Virus record (IMG/VR): IMGVR_UViG_3300043425_001539
Coordinates: 1 to 64,000 of that record
Direction: 5' to 3' (one strand)
Length of the DNA: 64,000 nucleotides
The notes beneath the pieces were generated by a model, which was not told the origin of the DNA, made no database searches, and saw only the letters and a program-made list of their open reading frames with translations. Positions 35,318 to 46,013 of the stretch are shown one piece after another; the stretch's first letter is position 1, and every line of letters starts with the position of its first letter. A program made the position numbers and the translations under genes.

Positions 35318-35743
35318 TTAAAATAATCTATAAATTTTTCGTTTTTTAAAAATTCCGTATTTAAGGTCCAATTCTTTTAAAAGTTTTTCTTTATATGCGG
35401 GAGATAGCTCATCATATAAAACATCATAAGATATACTCATAAATTCCGCAATATTAATAAATCTTTCAATTGCCGTAATTGCTTCGGTTTCCTTTAATCT
35501 TTCATCAAAATAATAATAAATTTGCGCAACTTCACTTCTTGGTACTTTTTTACTTTTATTATATTCATCGTAAAATTCAGAAGATATAAAGATTTGGTAT
35601 AAATCTTTTTGTAGCTGATTTTCTATGTATTCTTCAAAAAAATCTTTAGGCCTATGAATATCATTTACTTCAATTTTTCCAAATTGTTCAAATTCTAAAT
35701 CGCCTGTATTATAACGGTTATTAAATATTTTATCTTCTTTCAT
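35318..35743 (-). CDS. Hypothetical protein
   Basis: 141-aa ORF coupled between the helicase and gp47. Confidence 0.7.
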   Translation of the reverse strand: MKEDKIFNNRYNTGDLEFEQFGKIEVNDIHRPKDFFEEYIENQLQKDLYQIFISSEFYDEYNKSKKVPRSEVAQIYYYFDERLKETEAITAIERFINIAEFMSISYDVLYDELSPAYKEKLLKELDLKYGIFKKRKIYRLF

Positions 35744-37044
35744 TATTCTGTGATTATTGTTGAGTCTGGATCTTCTACAATTCGCATGTAGTCATAATTA
35801 ATTAAAAATTTTCTACGTGAATTTTTATATCCATCATCACGATTTGCAATAAGTTTTAAAATGTATTCACGATTAGCGTGCATAATCTCATCTTGTATGA
35901 TACCAAACATTGCATCAACTGTATGCCCAAGTGCAGCTGACTCCGAAATGTTTGTTGCATTTAAATCAGTGCTGCCAAAGCCTGATCTATTAATCTGTGT
36001 TGCTGTGATAATTGCCCAATCATTTCGCATTGCCATTGCTCGTAAGTCTTCAGCAATTTGTTTGATTTTCATATACATATTTTCTGAATTGGGATTTCTC
36101 CAATTCTTTAAGATATTAATATAGTCAAGGACAATTACTTTAAATTTTATTCCTTTGGTTTCTTCCATTTTTTGGAGATACATTTCAATATCAGGAACGC
36201 CAGCCGATGAAGTAGGAAATTCTTTTACGTATAATTTACCAGGAACTTGTAAACTATCATAACCTATCTGTGTTAGCTTTTTCTTCATCATAACTTTGTC
36301 TTCAGCAGCCTTAGCATATTCCTTCATGTTTACATTCAGTAAATTTGCACCCAGACGTTTAACCAATTTACGATCACGCATTTCTAATGAAAGAACCGCT
36401 GTGTTATATCCAAGTCTTACGCAATTAGCTGCAATATTTGCCAGCCAAATAGATTTTCCGATTTTCATTTCACCGATATAGCAAAATAACGCTTTTGAAT
36501 AAAATCCACCGCCAAGGACAAGATCAATATATGAAAACCCAGAACTAAAAGTATCTGATGTAGGCTGAATATGTGAATCGGGATTAAAGAAATCAAGTCC
36601 TTCATCAAATCCAAATTGAATATTATTTCTTTCTGTGATAATATTCTTTGCATTTTGCACAACATCCTTGACATTATCAACAGAAACTTTTGTTGTTTTT
36701 AAATATGTTATTAAGTCAAGAACGGAAATGTCAAGATTTTTATATTCAATCCACGATTCAGCTGTTTGCTGCAGCCAATCGTCATCATATTCTTTAAGAT
36801 TAACGTCAAATAAAGATTCGATTTTTGAAGGCACCAAATCTCCGTCGATGCCTTTTACTTTAGTTAATTCAACTATTTGAGACTTAGTTGGAATAGAATT
36901 ATACTTTTCAGTAAATTCTTTGGTTATATCATATATTTTTTTAATATCATCAGTTTCAAAAAATCTATTATTAACAACAGATATTAATTCTTTTCTTGAA
37001 AGAAGATAATGAAAAAATATTTTTTCTAAATGTACAGCTACCAT
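35743..37044 (-). CDS. Replicative helicase (gp41/DnaB-like)
   Basis: GEMKIGKS, SLEM, VLDYI, TATQINR, ISES; middle-like motif at 37051-37077. Confidence 0.93.
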   Translation of the reverse strand: MVAVHLEKIFFHYLLSRKELISVVNNRFFETDDIKKIYDITKEFTEKYNSIPTKSQIVELTKVKGIDGDLVPSKIESLFDVNLKEYDDDWLQQTAESWIEYKNLDISVLDLITYLKTTKVSVDNVKDVVQNAKNIITERNNIQFGFDEGLDFFNPDSHIQPTSDTFSSGFSYIDLVLGGGFYSKALFCYIGEMKIGKSIWLANIAANCVRLGYNTAVLSLEMRDRKLVKRLGANLLNVNMKEYAKAAEDKVMMKKKLTQIGYDSLQVPGKLYVKEFPTSSAGVPDIEMYLQKMEETKGIKFKVIVLDYINILKNWRNPNSENMYMKIKQIAEDLRAMAMRNDWAIITATQINRSGFGSTDLNATNISESAALGHTVDAMFGIIQDEIMHANREYILKLIANRDDGYKNSRRKFLINYDYMRIVEDPDSTIITE

Positions 37045-37077
37045 ATTAATTTATATACATTGAATAACTAATTGTTT

Positions 37078-37407
37078 TTAGGACCAAGGATTATTAATAA
37101 CTTGATATTGCATTTCAGGTTTTTTACCTGACGTCAAACCTATTCTTTGTAAAAAAGCGCCTGGGCAATCTTCCGGATCAGCTGCATAATCCAAAAATCC
37201 TGAAAGCTCACTAATAGTGCCTACACCGTCTTTCATGTAAGGCCACACTTGAGACGGTGTAAAAGGACTATTTAGTTCTTCTTTGTCTGATAAGTTACTA
37301 AGAAGCATATATGTTAAATCAGTGTGTGATGGAAAGCTTTCCATCTCTTTATACACATTTAACAAATATTTAATAGGTAATTTGTTTTGATTAATCTTCA
37401 TTTTCAT
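37078..37407 (-). CDS. Hypothetical protein (likely start 37407 or 37401)
   Basis: ORF coupled to the end of UvsX part 3. Confidence 0.55.
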   Translation of the reverse strand: MKMKINQNKLPIKYLLNVYKEMESFPSHTDLTYMLLSNLSDKEELNSPFTPSQVWPYMKDGVGTISELSGFLDYAADPEDCPGAFLQRIGLTSGKKPEMQYQVINNPWS

Positions 37408-38140
37408 CTTCAAAAATATCTCCAATAATTTCGTCGTCTTCAATTTGATTAACGTCGCCAATATTTGGAAGCATAAACATTTTTTTGATAATTTTTTCGT
37501 CAAGCTCTTCTAATACTTCTTTAGTAATAACTCTTGAAGTAAATAAATCCTGTGGTTTAATTTCTTCGCACAAATGTCTGACTGCAATGGTACGTGCCGT
37601 TGGCTTATCTTCAAAATAAAAAACTGTTTCTGTTCCGTCTTCGTTAGTTTTGACGAATCTTGTTGACTCAATTATATCTTTTTTCTCATGTCCTTTTGCA
37701 TACGTTTTTTCAAATTCTTTTTGTGTAATTAGTTTACCTTTTTGAATCCCGCAATTTTCCCAATTTATGTATTCTTCTAATCCAACATAAGGATTCATTC
37801 CTTTATAAAAGGAAATATGGAATTTAATAGGTAAAGGACGAGCAAATCTATTTTTAGCTGGTTTTGAAGTTACGATAATTCCAGTTTTCATGGCAAAACC
37901 GTTAGAACCAACTGCTCCTTCTTTAAGGCCAGCTTTTGATAATTGAACTATGATTGATGCATTGTATATAGCTCCGCCGCCACCTGAAATTGTTTGTCCT
38001 GGAATAAAAGAACCGATTGAATTATGCATAATGACACCTTCTTTAGAAATATAATGGTGCTCATCTGCAACTTCAATATCATATACTGTGTTCAAGTTGC
38101 CTTGTTCTTTTTTAAGAAGTTTTAGTTTTTTCATATTCAT
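37391..38140 (-). CDS. uvsX: UvsX/RecA part 3: 38-40-aa split-intein C-fragment plus 209-aa C-extein
   Basis: VYDIEVADEHHYI..IMHN|SIGSFIPGQTISGGGGAIYNAS..KNRF. Confidence 0.9.
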   Translation of the reverse strand: MNMKKLKLLKKEQGNLNTVYDIEVADEHHYISKEGVIMHNSIGSFIPGQTISGGGGAIYNASIIVQLSKAGLKEGAVGSNGFAMKTGIIVTSKPAKNRFARPLPIKFHISFYKGMNPYVGLEEYINWENCGIQKGKLITQKEFEKTYAKGHEKKDIIESTRFVKTNEDGTETVFYFEDKPTARTIAVRHLCEEIKPQDLFTSRVITKEVLEELDEKIIKKMFMLPNIGDVNQIEDDEIIGDIFEDENED

Positions 38141-39149
38141 TTATTTTTAATTGTAATTCTTCATATGTTATGGAATTAGTTGCGCCTTTTGATAAATTTT
38201 CCACGAATGGAATAAATTCAAGATTTGCAATATGGGAAGCTATTAAAGGGTCTATACACATCTCAAAACAAGATCTGATTGACAAGCTATGATCTATGTG
38301 ATACATCATTTTTCCTCTTTTTATTTCCCAATTATTGCCAAATTTTGCGTTTCCATGGTTGATTAAAGTTTCTTCTGTTAATATTCTAACTAATTTTATA
38401 TATTCATTAAGAGTTAATATTTCTTGATTTATGAGTTTTTCAGATATAAATTTAACATCTTCAATGTCTATACCAAGTTTGGATGCCAACATTTTTCTTT
38501 TAAAAATGTCTACATGCATAGGATTACTTGTGTTATATTTTTGATTAAATGATGATAACCATTTTTCTTTAACATTTTTGTCTGACAGCGGATTTGGACC
38601 ACCGTATTTTTCTTTACATGTATTTTTTGCTTTTTCCTTAACAATGTCACTTTTTTGTGCTATTTCATTTCCGTACTTTATTTTCCAAGTTTTTGCTCTA
38701 GACTCTTTAAATCCTTCTATTTTAAAATTATGATTTACGCCGTATTTTTCTTGTAAGGTATTTTTTCGCTTCGTTTTAATTTCATTTTTTTCCGTCTCGC
38801 TAAGCATTGAATAAGTATTTGAATAAGATTCAGATCGTTTTCTTTTTATTTCTAAATCTTTAGCTTGATTAAATGCTCGACAAGAATGACTACAAAACAT
38901 TTTTTTCCCGCCGTCATTTATCAGAGTATTACATTCTTTACATATATTCATTTCTGTTAATTCATTAAGAATATACGTTATCCTAATTTTAATATCGGTG
39001 TCAGAATTACAAAAAGATGTATTTTCTATTATTAGATTATGTAAATCTTTTCTTTTATATAATTCTTTTTTAACATTTCCTAAATTAGAAGTATTTTTGT
39101 TTTTTTCTAATACAATTTTCCAATTATTTTCTGTAATGTGAAGTTTCAT
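38112..39149 (-). mobile_element. Free-standing HNH-like homing endonuclease between UvsX parts 2 and 3
   Basis: CKEC/CSHSC zinc motifs, T..EKYG repeats, C-terminal HIDH..NL..ENLSKG. Confidence 0.8.
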
Positions 39150-39184
39150 AAGTTTTTATTTATATATCTCCATGAAACTTCACA
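39137..39184 (-). promoter_or_regulatory. 13-bp hairpin sequestering the HEG AUG, with a late promoter in the loop
   Basis: TGTGAAGTTTCAT..GATATATAAATAAAAA..ATGAAACTTCACA. Confidence 0.8.
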
Positions 39185-39203
39185 AATCATACATTTAGTT
39201 TCT

Positions 39204-40409
39204 TTATTGAGTTTGCTGCAAAATAAAATCACCTTCATTTAATTCATCTGCAGTTTTCCAGGAAGTCTCTTTATTCGGATCTTCATCCACAAGAAATTTA
39301 TGTAAAGGAGAACACTCAATTTCAATATTGTCTTCAAAAAATAATTTAACTGTTCTTGTTTTATCATATTTAAAAGTGTTTAACACCTCTTTACCGCCGT
39401 AAACAGTCATAACGGTATCACCTATTTTAATTTCATTAAGTTGTTTAATTTCGCCATTACCCATCATAATTTCTGTATCGCCTAAGGCACAAGCATATGT
39501 GTGATTTGTGAATATAAACGGGATTTTAAATTCTGCAAGATCTGTAGTAATCACACGGAAAAGTGATCTTAGATCTTGTTGTTTTGTCATATCCTTTTTT
39601 TCACTTCCTGATGCTGCATCTGCTTTTTCTTTGGTTGTTGCAAGATTTCCTAAAGAATCAAGAACCAATAAAATTTTAGGTAATTCTGCTCCTTTATCTT
39701 TTGCTTTTTTAAGTTGGTCACAAAGATTAGAAACAAAATGTCGTACTTCAAGTGATGTACTTACAGGTTGATACCGAACTCCTTCAGGGTCTATTCCAAA
39801 GTTACGCATAGTAGTTTCATCAACCGCAGCTTCTGAGTCACAGTATATAATATGATATCCCATTTTTTGGGCTTCACGGCAAGCATTCAAGGTTAAGAAT
39901 GTTTTTCCTGTGTTATGTGAAGATATACCGTCGCCGGCCCAATACCTATGATTTTCATGAAGCACCTCCCAGTCATATACTTCTTCTGTTCTTGTTGCAG
40001 AACATTTTTTTACATTATAAAAGCCATCTTTAGTTAAAACAGAATCCTTTGTTGTTAAATCTTCTGCTTTTTTCCAGCCATTTAATGTTTCATAAAGATG
40101 ATCTTGTGAAGATTCGCATACATAATTATTTTCTAATTCTAATTTGTATATTTTTCTTGGTTTCTTAATATAAAAGTTTCCAATAGGTTGATAACCGTCT
40201 GGTGTATCAATAAAAATTGCCGAATCTTTTAAAGATACTAATTCTCCAGCTGTAATTTCTATTGAATTTTCTTCAGCATGTAAATTAAATCTCTGTATAA
40301 TTTCATTATCCGATAAATGATCAAAATTTTCTTTAGGATAACAAAATTTTAATTCTTCGCGTAAAATTTCAGGGTCATAAATTGCTTTTTCTGTTTCAAG
40401 ATTTTGCAT
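39204..40409 (-). CDS. uvsX: UvsX/RecA part 2: 166-aa IntC, 140-aa extein, 95-aa IntN of a second intein
   Basis: SQDH..VYDWEV..SSHN|TGKT..DSE..VLDSLGNL..FTNHTYA|CALGDT..CSPLHKF..LNEGDFI. Confidence 0.92.
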   Translation of the reverse strand: MQNLETEKAIYDPEILREELKFCYPKENFDHLSDNEIIQRFNLHAEENSIEITAGELVSLKDSAIFIDTPDGYQPIGNFYIKKPRKIYKLELENNYVCESSQDHLYETLNGWKKAEDLTTKDSVLTKDGFYNVKKCSATRTEEVYDWEVLHENHRYWAGDGISSHNTGKTFLTLNACREAQKMGYHIIYCDSEAAVDETTMRNFGIDPEGVRYQPVSTSLEVRHFVSNLCDQLKKAKDKGAELPKILLVLDSLGNLATTKEKADAASGSEKKDMTKQQDLRSLFRVITTDLAEFKIPFIFTNHTYACALGDTEIMMGNGEIKQLNEIKIGDTVMTVYGGKEVLNTFKYDKTRTVKLFFEDNIEIECSPLHKFLVDEDPNKETSWKTADELNEGDFILQQTQ

Positions 40410-40419
40410 ATAGTGTATT

Positions 40420-41562
40420 TTATTTTAAATTTATATTCAATAAGTTTTTGATAGTTTCTTGATTATTTCTTTGATAATCCCAAACTACAAAATATAAAAA
40501 TCCAGCTTCTTCTGCAATACGTTTTTTTTCTTTATCTTTTTGCAATGATTCTTCATAAGTATAAATAGGATTTTTCCAATTTTCTTTTGACTTGTTAGAA
40601 TCAGCGTGCCAAAAACTTCCGTGATATTCAATAATTATCTTTTTTTCAGGAATGACAAAGTCATAAAAATAAATCTTTTTATTTACGTTATCATATAAAA
40701 AATATTCATTTTTTCCGTATAAACAATTAAGATTTATAAAGTAATTTTTTTCTATTTCTTTAAAGAAAATATATGATTCAGTTGAAAAAAATTTGTTTCT
40801 TTTTATTCTTTTACAAATTATTTCTAATTTTTCATCATCTGGTTTATTTGCCCAATTCTTTTTAAATAAGTCTATTCTTTTTTCATATCTTTTTATACCT
40901 TCGTCATAACCGTATTTTTTTACATATGCTTGAAGAGATGTTGTAGTTTGTCTTTCTTTTAATGCATTTTTTGCATCTTCAAGTGTTAAACCGCGTTCCA
41001 AATAAAAACTTAACTGTCTATCAGAAACAGCTTTCCCAAGTTTTTTATACAAAGTATTTTTTATTTTACCTGCGCGTGAACATCTATTAAAAATTTTTTG
41101 TTTAGCCTCTTCTTGCGTTAGACCCTGATTTTTTACAAGCCAATCTGCATTTAAACCATTACCTTTTCTTTTGTTTATTTCTGCTTTTTCTTCTTTTGTT
41201 TTTTTGGAAAGCGTTGCTTGTATTTTTGCAGCAATCTCAGGCGTACAGGTTGATTGTCTTTTCTTAATTTTTTCAATTGCTTGAGCTTTACTCCATCCTC
41301 TGTCTATCCAATAATTAATATTTAATTGGGTTGCAGAAAAAAAACCAATCATTGATAAACAAATTCTGCTTGCCTGTTTTTTTTCGATCTGAACATAATT
41401 ATCAAGATAACGTTGATACATTTTCTCAAATTCGTTTGTGTCTGCATCATAATTAAAATTTGAAACAAGCTGTCTTACATACTTGATATAATCATCGTAA
41501 GACAGCTTGTTTTTAAAAATGCTCAACGGATTTTTACTCTTCGATTGTGTACCTTTCATCAA
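40420..41562 (-). mobile_element. Free-standing Vsr/DUF559-like homing endonuclease between UvsX parts 1 and 2
   Basis: Helical repeats (YW..RG.S..EA), then FYDF..IIIEYHGSFWHA..KD..K..IA...GF....VWD. Confidence 0.8.
40431..40457 (-). promoter_or_regulatory. Middle-type promoter AAACT-N15-AATATAA inside the last HEG codons, upstream of UvsX part 2
   Basis: Minus strand reads AAGAAACTATCAAAAACTTATTGAATATAA. Confidence 0.6.
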
Positions 41563-41818
41563 ATGTGCGGGTTTTCAGTATATATACTTTAACCTTTTCA
41601 TTTTTTGGCAAACATCCTGATTCACCCGCAAAACATATTGATCTTGAGTTTGGGATGCCTCCAAAGAGAGAGCCAGTTAATTGCGCATTTAACATAAAAT
41701 TGCCCGTAGGAATATATTCATCAATTTTAGAAAAAGTGTTGTGAGTGATGATCGATCCTTTAGGATTAATTTTTGACAGCGCTGAATCTAATTCAGAAAA
41801 AGAAAATGATTTAGCCAT
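41534..41818 (-). CDS. uvsX: UvsX/RecA part 1: 68-aa N-extein plus 26-aa split-intein N-fragment
   Basis: IPTGNFMLNAQLTGSLFGGIP..FAGESG|CLPKNEKVKV. Confidence 0.9.
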   Translation of the reverse strand: MAKSFSFSELDSALSKINPKGSIITHNTFSKIDEYIPTGNFMLNAQLTGSLFGGIPNSRSICFAGESGCLPKNEKVKVYILKTRTFDERYTIEE

Positions 41819-41820
41819 TT

Positions 41821-42084
41821 TTAGTTTATAGTATTTTTAAATTCTTGTAATGTTTTTTGTAGATTTGTATGTGAACTTGTTAAAGTTTGTTTGATTGATA
41901 AATATTCACTTTCAGGTAAAACGCTGGTATTAATAGTTTCAATGTATGAATCTCCTATTTCAATTGGTATGATATAGGACTCGGTATAAATATCAGGTTT
42001 TGAATGTAAATCTATATAGTTTACCAATTCATAATTTGAAAGATTATTAACATTTACATAGTGTATAAGAATTTCTTTTCTCAT
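41821..42084 (-). CDS. Hypothetical protein
   Basis: 87-aa ORF coupled to the PolB C-subunit gene. Confidence 0.55.
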   Translation of the reverse strand: MRKEILIHYVNVNNLSNYELVNYIDLHSKPDIYTESYIIPIEIGDSYIETINTSVLPESEYLSIKQTLTSSHTNLQKTLQEFKNTIN

Positions 42085-43262
42085 TAAAACAATTGTGTTC
42101 TGACAATTAATTCCGGTGAAAGCGCAGGTAAACCCATTGCAACTATAAAGCGATTAATAGGATCAATAATACATCGTGCAAATTGCGCATCATAATCAAC
42201 CGGTGGTGCAATTTCTACAGGATAATTACCAGGCAAATATCCAAATACGTTTTCCCCGCCATCATTATTTTTTGCATAATAGAATCTAACCTTGTCGCCG
42301 CTTTTAATTAATTGATACTTATTTTTCCATTTACTATTATTGATTAAAAAATTATGATATCCTGAAGCACGAACGTGCATTGGACAATGGTCATTAATTA
42401 CTAATTTTTTTCTATCATCAGCAATTCCTTTTTCATAATCTCCTATGCTTGAAGACATAGAAATATTTTCAATGTTATCCAACATAAATGTTTCTTTTTC
42501 CCGTTTAAGAATTTCTGTAAATTTGCGTAAATTTAATGATTTACGTTCTCTTAGGATAACTTCAAGCAATTCTTTTAACTTTTTTCTTGCAAATGCTGGT
42601 GTTGAAGATTGAGCAATCTCCACGCCTGTTGCTTTAATTTTTTGTTGTGAATTATAAAAAATTCCGCCATTTGCACCACCTTTCCAAGCAAGATCTAATA
42701 CATATTTCTTTTTCTTTAAAAAGATTCCTGAATATGAAAGGGTTTCCATTTCCAAATCTTGAATATTTTCTGTGCCTGATTTTTTAGCCATAGATTCAAA
42801 ATTTTTCTCAAGATATTCTTTAAGACGATTTTCATAAATCATCATAATTAGTTTTCTTGTATCTTCTTTCCAATCACAGCCATTGACAATTTCTTGTAAA
42901 GTTATATAACAAGAATCCGTGTCTCCATAAACAGCAACCTCATCTTTTACCGGGTTTACTGTGTTTAATCCTAGTAATTCATGAAGCTTTTTATCTTTAT
43001 GCCAAAATTCTAAAAAATAACGATTAATAATTCTGCTTGTAAATTTAATCATTTCTTGTCCTTGTAAAGTAATAGCTTCAGCTACTTTTACGTTATAACC
43101 AACAAAATAAGTTGATGCTAATGCTCCATAACAACTATTAATAAAGATTTTTACAGATTGTTCCTCATTTTTTTTAAGATTCATTAAATATGTTAACCTT
43201 TCTATTTCCGATAAAATTTCTTCTCTAGTTGCAGAAGAAGGATCAATTTTACAGTATTTCAT
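42084..43262 (-). CDS. polB: Family B DNA polymerase, C-terminal subunit (gp43B-like)
   Basis: Motif B QSVKIFINSCYG, AITLQGQ, motif C YGDTDS, KKKY, GVEIAQSSTP. Confidence 0.92.
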   Translation of the reverse strand: MKYCKIDPSSATREEILSEIERLTYLMNLKKNEEQSVKIFINSCYGALASTYFVGYNVKVAEAITLQGQEMIKFTSRIINRYFLEFWHKDKKLHELLGLNTVNPVKDEVAVYGDTDSCYITLQEIVNGCDWKEDTRKLIMMIYENRLKEYLEKNFESMAKKSGTENIQDLEMETLSYSGIFLKKKKYVLDLAWKGGANGGIFYNSQQKIKATGVEIAQSSTPAFARKKLKELLEVILRERKSLNLRKFTEILKREKETFMLDNIENISMSSSIGDYEKGIADDRKKLVINDHCPMHVRASGYHNFLINNSKWKNKYQLIKSGDKVRFYYAKNNDGGENVFGYLPGNYPVEIAPPVDYDAQFARCIIDPINRFIVAMGLPALSPELIVRTQLF

Positions 43263-43278
43263 TAAAAATTGTTTAAAT

Positions 43279-43305
43279 TTATATTCATTATTTATTAAAT
43301 AGTTT
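43279..43305 (-). promoter_or_regulatory. Middle-type promoter AAACT-N15-AATATAA for the PolB C-subunit
   Basis: Shared motif. Confidence 0.55.
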
Positions 43306-43389
43306 TTTTTAAAAATATCACCAAATTAATGTTTTTTTCATTTGTGTGTTTTATGTTTTTTATATATAAACAAAAATAATATCATAGAA

Positions 43390-44463
43390 ATGTTTAAAGA
43401 ACTTATTACAAATCACTTAAAAGAATTCGGCACGCTAAAAGGATTTCAGCAAAAATATAAAGATTTAATTAAAACCGAAATTATAAACTACCATTCATTT
43501 CAAGAATTTGCTTATTTTCAATATTATGAATTAACAGAACGACCTAAATGTAATTGTGGTTCAAGCGTTTCTTTTCGTGGCTTTGCAAACGGTTATTTAA
43601 AATTTTGTAAACCATGTGGGTTAAAACAAAAATGGATAAACTATGAAAAACCAAACATCAAAGAAGTTAAAAAATGTTTAAATTGCAATAATGAATATGA
43701 ATTCAAGCCAAGAAAAAAAGAACGTTTATTCTGTTCAACTAAATGTTCAGCAAAATATATGCACGAAAATATGAGTAAAGAAAATAAAGAAATGCGTGTA
43801 TCAAAAATTAAAAAAACCAATTTATTAAAATATGGCAGTGAGTGGGTAGTTAATTCAGAATACACAAAAAATAAAACATTTGAAAAACATGGATATTACT
43901 ATCCATTCCAATCGGAAAAAATTTTAAATAAATGTACTGAAACACACAAAAAACTTACAGGATATACAAATCCTTTACATAATCCGTTGACTGTAAAAAA
44001 AATGATTGATACTAAAATGGATAAATATGGAGATTTGCTTAAACCAATATATTCATATAAAGATTTTATTTTACCGTCTGGGACTACAATTAAAGTACAA
44101 GGATATGAAGATCTTGCTATTAATTATTTACTTAAATATTATAAAGAATCGGATATCATAATAGGGCGCGCCCAAATTGAAAAATACACAGGTCCTTTAA
44201 CATATACATCAGGTAATAAAATTCATAGGTATTATCCTGATATTTATATTGCATCAAAAAACTTAGTAATTGAAGTAAAATCCAAATATACTTTTAATTT
44301 GCATAAAGAAAAACTCAATTTTGTATATGACAATTTAAAAAAAGGCCCATTAACATTTCATATATTTATTTTTAATAGTAGAAATGCCAATGAACCTATT
44401 ATTATAGAATCAATTGATGAATTGTGTGTTAGATCTTTACCGCCTGCTCCTCATTTTTTTTAA
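43390..44463 (+). mobile_element. Free-standing PD-(D/E)xK homing endonuclease on the opposite strand (likely ATG at 43390)
   Basis: Zinc ribbons, KT...KYG repeats, VQGYE..YYPDIYI..VIEVKS; late motif TATATATAAAC at 43361-43371. Confidence 0.75.
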
Positions 44464-44548
44464 GATTCATTAAATTGGTTAATCTTGATATTTCAGCTTT
44501 TATTTCATCAATGCTGGAATTATTAGGATCTATTTGGCAATATTTCAT
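44429..44548 (-). pseudogene. 39-aa duplicate of the PolB C-subunit N-terminus
   Basis: MKYCQIDPNNSSIDEIKAEISRLTNLMNLKKNEEQAVKI* is 27/39 identical to the start of 42084-43262. Confidence 0.9.
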
Positions 44549-44569
44549 ATTTATAATTTTTATAAACTT

Positions 44570-44600
44570 AGCGGTTCTTGTTTATTTGACAAGAACCGCT
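44570..44600. terminator. 12-bp hairpin after the clamp gene (no clear U tract)
   Basis: AGCGGTTCTTGT/ACAAGAACCGCT. Confidence 0.5.
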
Positions 44601-44607
44601 GTTTAAA

Positions 44608-45351
44608 TTATTCTGCTTTACCAATAATCATTTTGGTGTCAGATTCTATTGAGTGAAAAATTAAGCGGTCCTCGGAAAGATAAACCATTGTATCTTCTTT
44701 ATCCAAAAAAGCAAATTGGTTTTTATAAACCGACACAGATATGTCTGCTGATTTATTTTCAATTTGACCAATATTAAGATTAAAGCTTTTACCTGATACT
44801 ATTACATTTCCTTTTTTTACTCCAAGAGTTAAAAGCTTTTGGTCGGAATCAATACCAGCTAAGCTATTAATTTTGGATTGAATTTCTTTAGTAAGAACAA
44901 ATGAAATTTCTGAAGATGAAGAATCGGCAATTTTGTCCATCATTTCATCCGTGATATAGGTAAAAAGCCTTAAACTTGCACATTGAAAGTTGATGTCCAA
45001 TGATTCATTTTTAAGATTAATATCTGTTCCTACATTTCCGTCTGATGTTGATTCTTGGTGTAGCTCAAAGTTAATTGCGCTGTTACCAAAATGCGAAAAA
45101 GCTTTCATCATTCGTTCAACAGAAAATAGACCAAATTTGACATCTTCGTCAAATGCATCATCATTGCTAAACATTCGCCCAATTGGTATCTTTGAAGATT
45201 TAACAACTGATCTTTCAGGTGTATGCGTTTTTGCTTTTAAATAACCGTCTTCAACTTCAAGTAAAAGGTTTGATGAAACGGGTGAAAATCTTTTTAAGAA
45301 ATTTGTTAGCTCTTCGGTTGAAGTAAGTTGTAAAGATTTAGTACTTTTCAT
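44608..45351 (-). CDS. Sliding clamp (gp45/PCNA-like)
   Basis: 247 aa, two-domain alpha/beta pattern; next to PolB; middle-like motif upstream. Confidence 0.6.
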   Translation of the reverse strand: MKSTKSLQLTSTEELTNFLKRFSPVSSNLLLEVEDGYLKAKTHTPERSVVKSSKIPIGRMFSNDDAFDEDVKFGLFSVERMMKAFSHFGNSAINFELHQESTSDGNVGTDINLKNESLDINFQCASLRLFTYITDEMMDKIADSSSSEISFVLTKEIQSKINSLAGIDSDQKLLTLGVKKGNVIVSGKSFNLNIGQIENKSADISVSVYKNQFAFLDKEDTMVYLSEDRLIFHSIESDTKMIIGKAE

Positions 45352-45395
45352 TGCGTATAATTTTAATTATTTTATTCATATTTAAACATATAGTT

Positions 45396-46013
45396 TTAAA
45401 TTATCTGATCTATTAATCCGTATTTTAAACATTGTTTAGAGTTCCACCAAATATCATGTGAAAGTATTTTATCTAAATCTTTAGCAGGAATTTTTGTTTT
45501 TGCTGTATACCATTCCTTTATGGTTTTCATAATGTTATCATTGCTTGTCATCTGATCTTTAAGTCTACTATATTTTCCCCAATGTACATCACTTAATTCA
45601 TGAATTAACATATATGAATTTTTTCTCATTAATCTTTTTGCTCCTGCTGTTGATATAATAGTTGCACCAGATGCTGCAGCTCCTTCAATTACTGTTATAA
45701 CTGGCGTTAATGAAGAAATGCGTTCAATCGTATCCGCAATTGCAAATGATGAAAAAACTTCGCCACCCATAGAATTTATATGTAAAAATATAGGCGCGGG
45801 TGATCCTACTTCTTGCATTGATGAAAATGCGGTGGGCGCTAATCTCATTGATAGTTCATGCAAGGCGCGATTAAGAGCCATTGCTGATGATTCATCCACT
45901 CCGCCATAAAACCAAACGTGGTCACCTATAACCGAAACTGCTTGATGCGTAGATAAGTCTGAATCATAATCATTCTTTTTTAAATTTAATAAATTTGTGT
46001 TTTGTGTAATCAT
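45396..46013 (-). CDS. ClpP-family serine protease
   Basis: IFLHINSMGG, AASGAT, MLIHE, CLKYGLIDQII. Confidence 0.85.
   Translation of the reverse strand: MITQNTNLLNLKKNDYDSDLSTHQAVSVIGDHVWFYGGVDESSAMALNRALHELSMRLAPTAFSSMQEVGSPAPIFLHINSMGGEVFSSFAIADTIERISSLTPVITVIEGAAASGATIISTAGAKRLMRKNSYMLIHELSDVHWGKYSRLKDQMTSNDNIMKTIKEWYTAKTKIPAKDLDKILSHDIWWNSKQCLKYGLIDQII

Follow-up and report, generated by a model that had tools for sequence, protein, structure and literature searches.

A phage uvsX gene in three pieces, with halves of two different split inteins at its breaks

Can a gene that is broken twice, the first time in the middle of its nucleotide-binding loop, still specify a single protein? This question is raised by a 64,000-nucleotide stretch of DNA (hereinafter, the window), bases 1-64000 of the 238,475-bp IMG/VR contig IMGVR_UViG_3300043425_001539 from an uncultured phage. 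Within positions 37391-41818 of the window, five consecutive minus-strand open reading frames (ORFs) encode the N-terminal piece of a UvsX/RecA recombinase (P1, 41534-41818, 94 amino acids, aa), a predicted product of a homing endonuclease gene (HEG) in the first gap (HEG-A, 40420-41562, 380 aa), the middle piece (P2, 39204-40409, 401 aa), a second predicted endonuclease in the second gap (HEG-B, 38112-39149, 345 aa), and the C-terminal piece (P3, 37391-38140, 249 aa). P1 consists of a 68-aa extein ending FAGESG and a 26-aa tail that starts with Cys; P2, of 166 aa ending SSHN, 140 aa running from TGKT to NHTYA, and 95 aa again starting with Cys; and P3, of 40 aa ending MHN and 209 aa starting SIGS. 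An initial annotation, made from the sequence alone, assigned the extra segments to two different split inteins. We arrive at the same reading: with a probability of about 0.85, the locus encodes tandem protein trans-splicing that would assemble three polypeptides into a UvsX of 417 aa.

The recombinase and its two inteins

The ORF coordinates and piece lengths of the initial annotation are correct to the residue, with minus-strand ORFs found at exactly the positions it gave. Extein 1 (41615-41818, minus strand; P1 residues 1-68) ends in the first half of the Walker A motif, FAGESG; extein 2 (39492-39911, minus strand; P2 residues 167-306) extends from TGKT, the second half of that motif, to NHTYA; and extein 3 (37391-38020, minus strand, including the stop codon; P3 residues 41-249) starts with SIGSFIPGQTISGGGG. 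We searched the three pieces separately and compared them with natural contiguous homologues rather than as a concatenated spliced product. The solved phage UvsX 9gbg_A is tiled in order by exteins 1, 2 and 3 (residues 17-64, 64-208 and 203-281, respectively). The UvsX-like family PHROG 97 is matched by extein 1 with an E-value of 2.9e-8 and by extein 2 with an E-value of 7e-25; extein 2 also matches the UvsX/RecA structures 7z3m, 9gbg and 3io5 in the PDB, and extein 3 aligns to 7z3m as well. A Foldseek search with the AlphaFold model of P2 retrieves, besides inteins, the UvsX/RecA cores 9gbg and 3io5. The exteins accordingly comprise a RecA-fold core that is colinear with known UvsX, and the Walker A Gly-Lys is invariant in the extein of 35 middle pieces.

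An uninterrupted UvsX of exactly 417 aa (cluster P0064, contig L002) provides a natural counterpart of the predicted product. It is 96% identical to extein 1 (residues 1-68), 98% to extein 2 (69-208) and 93% to extein 3 (209-417), and reads FAGESG|TGKTF and NHTYA|SIGSF at the two predicted junctions, which fall at 68|69 and 208|209 in 33 intact homologues (P0064 and 32 others). The 417-aa recombinase that the initial annotation had rebuilt by removing the intein halves (68+140+209 aa) is therefore matched by a natural contiguous protein at both junctions. The Walker A motif GESGTGKT is complete only across junction 1, as in the intact gene of L002. The gene order is shared as well: the topoisomerase, the ClpP-like protease, the gene for the C-terminal portion of DNA polymerase PolB, a small ORF, uvsX, another small ORF, the DnaB-like helicase and the Mre11/Rad50-like genes are syntenic between L002 and the window. 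The predicted product is of about 46 kDa, and the predicted tryptic peptide across junction 1 is SICFAGESGTGK. In GenBank, the nearest UvsX relatives, at 41-46% identity, are those of Prevotella Lak phages and of huge uncultured phages, a hint that the window phage has a Bacteroidota-type host.

Intein 1 is located inside the Walker A loop, GESG|TGKT. Its N-terminal half, IntN1 (41534-41614, minus strand, including the stop codon), is atypically short, 26 aa starting with Cys1 (CLPKNEKV...), and is terminated by a stop codon, whereas the C-terminal half, IntC1 (39912-40409, minus strand; P2 residues 1-166), has its own ATG, so that the two halves are on separate polypeptides. In IntC1, a helical N-terminal extension precedes the HINT core, in which block B contributes His104, block F contributes D146/E148 and block G reads SSHN. 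A phmmer comparison with the VidaL intein (6vgv) yields an E-value of 1.4e-12, with almost identical block F and G motifs, and the score against NCBIfam intein_Cterm at P2 residues 143-167 is exactly at the cut-off. With the AlphaFold model of P2 (35 homologues, mean pLDDT 84) as the query, 6vgv is the first Foldseek match (E 7e-10, TM 0.74, rmsd 1.7 Å), with other inteins next. When 35 middle pieces, 40-81% identical to that of the window, are aligned, H104, D146, E148, S164, H165 and N166 are invariant in all 35.

In the window, P1 residue 69, right after GESG, is Cys. The same holds across the relatives: Cys1 is present in 15 of the 15 distinct N-pieces, in which a Cys-Leu start directly follows the P-loop G-x-S-G and the IntN tail is 15-32 aa long. 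Contiguous inteins inserted at this site (gene 204 of Salicola phage SCTP-2; cluster P0055) have an N-terminus homologous to IntN1. The assignment of IntN1 is made because of its position, the Cys-Leu start, and the homology to the contiguous forms and to that of Pseudomonas phage PA5oct. The residue that follows the intein (+1) is Thr in 65 cases, Ser in seven and Cys in four, and never any other. From these features, we infer that intein 1 is an atypically split class-1 intein capable of trans-splicing. It shares the very short IntN, the long IntC with blocks B, F and G, and Cys1 with VidaL, AceL-TerL, GOS-TerL and PolB16; unlike VidaL, it starts its IntC with a helical insertion of some 45 aa and has about 10 extra residues in IntN and a Thr at +1. 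IntN is also longer here than in PA5oct and in the related locus L066 (26 versus 15-17 aa). The insertion is modelled as three helices (40244-40373, minus strand; P2 residues 13-55; pLDDT 85-93). It is missing from the inteins of PA5oct and of L065 and L066 and is kept in most three-piece relatives; in the contiguous P0055, the stretch that matches it lies at the split point.

Intein 2 is of a different type. IntN2 (39204-39491, minus strand, including the stop codon; 95 aa, P2 residues 307-401) starts with Cys1 (C307) and carries the block B His370; IntC2 (38021-38140, minus strand; 38-40 aa, P3 residues 1-40) has a Lys-rich start and a block G ending MHN, and is 38 aa long if translation starts at the third-codon ATG and 40 aa otherwise. 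For IntN2, the match to Pfam Intein_splicing has an E-value of 1.2e-12 and a score of 48.4 bits (cut-off 35.8), and that to the gp41-1 intein 6qaz has an E-value of 1e-5. IntC2 scores 24 bits against NCBIfam intein_Cterm (cut-off 15.6, E 3.3e-5) and covers positions 130-155 of Pfam Intein_splicing. Both C307 and H370 (in SPLH) are invariant in 35 of 35 middle pieces, and HN|S/T, MHN|S in the window, is conserved in the C-pieces of other loci. The resemblance to gp41-1 (6qaz/6riz) extends to the canonical split into 95 and 40 aa, Cys1, Ser at +1, the acidic IntN tail and the Lys-rich IntC head. We infer that intein 2 is a canonically split class-1 intein that can splice in trans. In contrast to the gp41-1 intein, its host protein is UvsX, not the gp41 helicase, and it occupies two neighbouring UvsX sites: gp41-1-like inteins follow HTYA in 45 clusters, and in 13 they follow GGG, which is 13-14 residues further along. 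Both site variants are seen in three-piece genes (clusters that bear on the two sites include P0018, P0045, P0046, P0049, P0052, P0054, P0056, P0065 and P0096, as well as locus L005). The distal site may be equivalent to a known intein site in mycobacterial RecA.

The two split inteins of the initial annotation thus remain distinct, one VidaL-like with an atypical split and the other gp41-1-like with a canonical split, and the middle piece does carry an intein half at each end, IntC at the N-terminus and IntN at the C-terminus. Could the halves be mispaired? Because IntN2 can be aligned to the IntC1 core, block B is present in both; a combination of IntN1 with IntC2 would have no block-B core, and inteins 1 and 2 would therefore be unable to complement each other. 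Within each pair, the charges are opposite, as is typical of split inteins: the IntN2 tail is at -9 and the IntC2 head at +4, and the IntC1 head is at -9 and the start of IntN1 is basic. From topology and charge, the two inteins appear to be orthogonal.

The pathway that we propose is as follows. The uvsX gene would have been invaded at two sites by intein/homing-endonuclease elements, yielding three polypeptides: ExtN-IntN1 (68+26 aa), IntC1-ExtM-IntN2 (166+140+95 aa) and IntC2-ExtC (40+209 aa). IntN1 and IntC1 would associate into a VidaL-type HINT domain split just after the first strands, and IntN2 and IntC2 into a gp41-1-type HINT domain with the canonical split site. Mispairing would be avoided through sequence divergence and topology, with the block-B core in IntC1 and IntN2 and not in IntN1 or IntC2. 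In each intein, class-1 splicing would then begin with an acyl shift at Cys1. Transesterification would next transfer the chain to the +1 residue, which is Thr for intein 1 and Ser for intein 2; the terminal Asn would cyclise, and a further acyl shift would restore the peptide bond. The first join, Gly68-Thr69, would rebuild Walker A as GESGTGKT, and the second, Ala208-Ser209, would fall immediately ahead of the GGGG DNA-binding loop. The two gap-resident endonuclease genes would be the mobile agents by which each element spreads; splicing can apparently do without them, given that there are relatives in which one or both have been lost and the three pieces kept.

Alternatives to trans-splicing

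Several points weigh against trans-splicing of the three pieces. The case for it, in the window as in the three-piece relatives, comes entirely from sequence and predicted structure. IntN1, with its 26 aa, alone matches no database model; IntC1 includes the helical extension of about 45 aa that is absent from VidaL; and IntN2 falls just below the cut-off of NCBIfam intein_Nterm (22.6 versus 24.5 bits). Synonymous divergence (dS) in the comparisons used for selection is saturated, so that dN/dS values indicate direction only and are to be read qualitatively. Finally, 64 kb of the 238-kb contig were read directly, and a distant RecA-like paralogue is possible elsewhere.

Under one alternative, the intein halves have lost splicing and only dock, keeping the three UvsX fragments together by non-covalent contacts. 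There is a precedent: the endonuclease-split NrdA of phage Aeh1 is reported to assemble via domains derived from a mobile element (PMC3045599). Docking alone would require none of the catalytic residues, but those of both inteins are invariant in the 35 diverged sequences; moreover, 192 intein residues left inside the Walker A loop should wreck nucleotide binding, and VidaL, the nearest solved relative of IntC1, and gp41-1 are both reported to be fast trans-splicers (PMC13014065). We consider docking very improbable.

Equally little credence is due to the possibility that only one intein is active, so that the protein would consist of two chains with one spliced junction and one non-covalent contact. 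The activity of each intein is deduced separately, IntN1 is very short, and intein 1 belongs to a subtype with an extra helical insertion. Against this, both inteins show the same complete catalytic conservation and are under purifying selection, and each is also found by itself in many phages as a two-piece gene, among them the cultured PA5oct for intein 1.

A third, slightly weaker alternative is that endonuclease insertions inactivated uvsX and that what is left of it in the three ORFs is decaying, with recombination provided by another gene or by the host. The limited portion of the genome that was inspected directly, 64 kb of 238 kb, leaves room for this, and endonuclease genes in relatives do decay (frameshifted in L016, remnants in L008, L021 and L042). 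The recombinase pieces themselves, in contrast, contain no frameshifts or stops, and the layout is kept in lineages that are only 40-50% identical. Compared with L002, the exteins are 78-83% identical in DNA and 93-98% in protein, with differences almost all at third codon positions; although synonymous change is saturated, dN/dS is 0.014 for extein 2, 0.036 for extein 3 and 0.014-0.036 for the exteins overall, and for the intein halves, compared with the three-piece locus L001, it is about 0.06-0.10. Judging from these ratios, the exteins and the intein halves are under strong purifying selection, at odds with the decay that the initial annotation had named, together with a contiguous uvsX elsewhere, as an outcome that would undo its reading. 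As to such a uvsX, two scans of the collection found a single uvsX locus, and no second copy, on the 238-kb contig. Decay is accordingly a very unlikely explanation.

An assembly artefact, or joining at the RNA level by an intron or by RNA trans-splicing, both likewise raised in the initial annotation and conceivable for metagenomic data and a region dense in mobile elements, can be practically dismissed, given that the window and a 49-kb contig from another sample do not differ at any of the 10,203 bases compared, the same layout is found in many diverged contigs, no Rfam intron or other RNA family is detected below E = 0.5 in 36500-45500, and the intervening coding parts are recognisable, conserved intein halves.

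Endonucleases and recurrence

The initial annotation placed a different free-standing endonuclease in each gap, and the two gap ORFs indeed belong to different families. The start of HEG-A overlaps the IntN1 coding sequence by 29 nt. Its matches to NCBIfam vsr (E 1.7e-4) and Pfam Vsr (E 0.005) are both below the cut-off, and the profile of its family matches the Vsr-like nuclease domain of AbaSI weakly (E 0.0011). With its AlphaFold model as the query, the best Foldseek matches in the PDB are Vsr (1vsr/1cw0) and the catalytic domain of I-Bth0305I (3r3p), with probabilities of 0.97-1.0 but E-values of only 0.03-0.2. Residues D300, E311, G314 and H318 are invariant in 13 homologues, and the family comprises 23 ORFs with the IEYxGxxWH motif, which reside in either gap 1 or gap 2, depending on the locus; PA5oct (gp275), L008, L011, L028, L066 and L068 have homologues in the gap that HEG-A occupies. 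These several weak signals agree in pointing to a Vsr-like (EDxHD-type) homing endonuclease.

The end of HEG-B overlaps the IntC2 coding sequence by 29 nt. Only the N-terminal modules of HEG-B account for its match to Pfam DUF7487 (PF24308; E 2.6e-15, 57.4 bits against a cut-off of 27); two PHROG families labelled 'homing endonuclease' are matched as well, 3339 (E 4.9e-12) and 12131 (E 1.6e-7). The C-terminal 100 aa of HEG-B have no match in Pfam or the PDB; by eye only, an HNH-like pattern is visible in this domain. A homologue with 52% identity occupies the same gap of L001. A third free-standing endonuclease-like ORF in the window (43342-44463, plus strand; DUF7487 E 1.6e-29) has the opposite orientation and separates a 247-aa ORF from the PolB C-terminal gene; it looks like a recent insertion because these two genes abut in L002.

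A 15-bp RNA hairpin (39137-39184, minus strand) encloses the start codon of HEG-B (39147-39149). The hairpin has a minimum free energy of -16.6 kcal/mol (z = -4.7; 0 of 200 shuffled sequences fold as well), and the loop holds TATAAATA (39157-39164), which resembles a T4 late promoter. In analogy to the regulation of T4-type HEGs, this arrangement might block translation from read-through transcripts and permit it from a late transcript initiated in the loop. For HEG-A, P2 and P3, no start-codon hairpin beyond chance was found. There is no Shine-Dalgarno sequence upstream of the ORF starts on the minus strand of 37045-42100, where the leaders are A/T-rich; TATAAAT(A) motifs are present upstream of HEG-B and the helicase gene. 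A scan for sigma-70 promoters and terminators detected no terminator-like sites between the five ORFs on the coding strand; its counts equal the shuffled background, hence it is otherwise uninformative.

How widespread is the three-piece layout? A census of the best 120 protein clusters homologous to P2, started from an intein-bearing query so that the counts are not population frequencies, includes 39 clusters of IntC1-extein-IntN2 middle pieces, 32 that are intein-free, 26 with split intein 1 only, 10 with split intein 2 only, seven with split intein 1 and a contiguous intein 2, and single cases of a contiguous intein 1. Complete three-piece loci are L001, L004, L008 and L011, and partial ones are L065 and L066. 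A search of phage genomes for the layout, as suggested in the initial annotation, therefore finds it to be recurrent in diverged metagenomic contigs, but a protein-level search finds no three-piece uvsX among 50,697 GenBank phage records, and a near-identical DNA search of GenBank phages yields no match. The forms that are found in GenBank are two-piece genes (the PA5oct group), extein 2 fused to IntN2 (Lak phages), and both inteins contiguous (SCTP-2), none of them annotated for the inteins in UvsX.

The complete loci differ in their endonuclease genes. In the window, both gaps harbor one; L001 lacks that of gap 1 and has that of gap 2; L008 has the gap 1 gene and, in gap 2, only an 82-aa stub of HEG-B; L011 has the gap 1 gene and none in gap 2; and in L004 both are absent, with a possible remnant in gap 1 seen by eye only. 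In L001, L004, L008 and L011, the three pieces with intact motifs are kept despite the missing or decayed endonuclease genes, which indicates that the split inteins outlive their endonucleases. Truncated or frameshifted endonuclease remnants are found at L016 3288-4480 (frameshifted), L008 5722-6060, L021 4090-4485 and L042 5236-6125, with the flanking split-intein halves intact. These remnants document endonuclease decay after fixation.

Identical middle exteins are found in different architectures, with both inteins split in P0008, intein 2 only in P0022, and none in P0115 and P0116. The extein tree, based on 140 columns and poorly resolved, requires at least 12 changes of the three-piece state; such gain and loss counts are lower bounds and do not amount to a history, and they fit ongoing gain and loss of the elements. 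Repeated origin is suggested by near-identical uvsX alleles that differ in having no element, one or two. With less confidence than we attach to the assembly of the window protein, yet on balance, we favour a broader view: natural tandem trans-splicing would exist and be common, with large phages building an essential recombinase out of three gene products by means of two co-resident orthogonal inteins; the state would be of repeated origin and stable after the decay of both endonuclease genes, and this would be its first described natural case.

PolB is represented in the window by a stand-alone 392-aa C-terminal gene (42084-43262, minus strand) that matches PHROG 1918 along its entire length and corresponds to positions 498-839 of an 856-position profile of the full-length polymerase; no adjacent N-terminal polymerase part and no intein motifs on the PolB piece were seen. 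In L001 (6516-7496) and L004 (9131-10255 and 1613-2347), the DnaB-like helicase gene and a fragment of PolB show faint or weak Intein_splicing matches and are adjoined by endonuclease-like ORFs. The helicase gene of the window (35743-37044) is uninterrupted. From these sequences, fractured replication genes seem to be numerous in this phage group.

Known systems and implications

The closest described arrangements are the fractured genes (Dassa, London, Stoddard, Schueler-Furman and Pietrokovski 2009, PMC2677866), 26 loci each broken in two, with UvsX appearing only as an intact neighbour of gp41 and a Vsr-like endonuclease family in half of the fractured genes described. As in those loci, the host is a phage DNA-metabolism gene, a split intein is present, the pieces are on the same strand and in order, a free-standing endonuclease gene lies between the halves, and a hairpin precedes an endonuclease ORF; one fractured-gene locus has no endonuclease, as do some relatives of the window, and both breaks in the window are fractured genes in the sense of that paper. 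In contrast to them, the window combines two elements in one gene, with different intein and endonuclease families and three polypeptides.

Inteins in the P-loop of UvsX as such are probably not new: Lake Vida UvsX inteins of the VidaL type have reportedly been listed by the Mootz and Pietrokovski groups.

Two genomes of named phages contain related forms. PA5oct (L006, NC_071039.1 134722-137728) has a fractured uvsX with intein 1 split at the same P-loop site, with a 17-aa IntN and a homologous Vsr-like gene in the gap, but in two pieces only. Its inteins are unannotated: the records list gp276 (81 aa) and gp275 (477 aa) as 'hypothetical' and gp274 as a 'UvsX-like recombinase'. The predicted intein-1 junction peptide of gp276 and gp274 is VTMFAGESGSGK. 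In SCTP-2 (L005, MF360958.1 202685-204655), gene 204, a 'hypothetical' protein of 656 aa, is a uvsX that has intein 1 at the same P-loop site and both inteins present, but contiguous within one ORF. The paper on MIJ3, a relative of PA5oct, noted only a PolB split intein.

A 2023 preprint describes natural inteins as encoded by one gene or by two. We found no natural gene assembled by two split inteins in the searchable full-text literature; an earlier mention in subscription papers on VidaL-type inteins is possible. The initial annotation was aware of no natural three-fragment case, and on this point the searchable literature agrees with it; the layout itself turns out to be recurrent in metagenomes. 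Engineered tandem trans-splicing, in which three segments are joined by two orthogonal split inteins (PMC12707363), resembles the window in having a middle segment flanked by the IntC and the IntN of two orthogonal inteins. The window differs from that laboratory design in being natural, genome-encoded, under selection and recurrent. Fractured genes, atypical and gp41-1-type inteins and Vsr-like endonucleases are all known, and the presence of two such elements on one gene appears to be new.

To our knowledge, natural split inteins have been described only as single breaks that yield two polypeptides, and the ligation of three segments with two orthogonal inteins has been a laboratory goal. 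If our reading is correct, a single protein is served in vivo by two split inteins that operate at the same time and do not cross-react. No earlier case of natural trans-splicing from three fragments would then have been described, and intein pairs would have co-evolved side by side on one substrate. For protein engineering, the relatives would offer many ready-made orthogonal pairs of a short-IntN atypical intein and a gp41-1-like one. For annotation, the implication is that such pieces are at present annotated as hypothetical or mislabelled, as in PA5oct and SCTP-2. For the biology of mobile elements, these phages provide an unusually complete series of homing-cycle states at two sites of one gene, from empty sites to one and then two elements; the inteins are contiguous or split, the endonuclease gene is present, decayed or absent, and the host gene, uvsX, encodes the recombinase on which homing depends.

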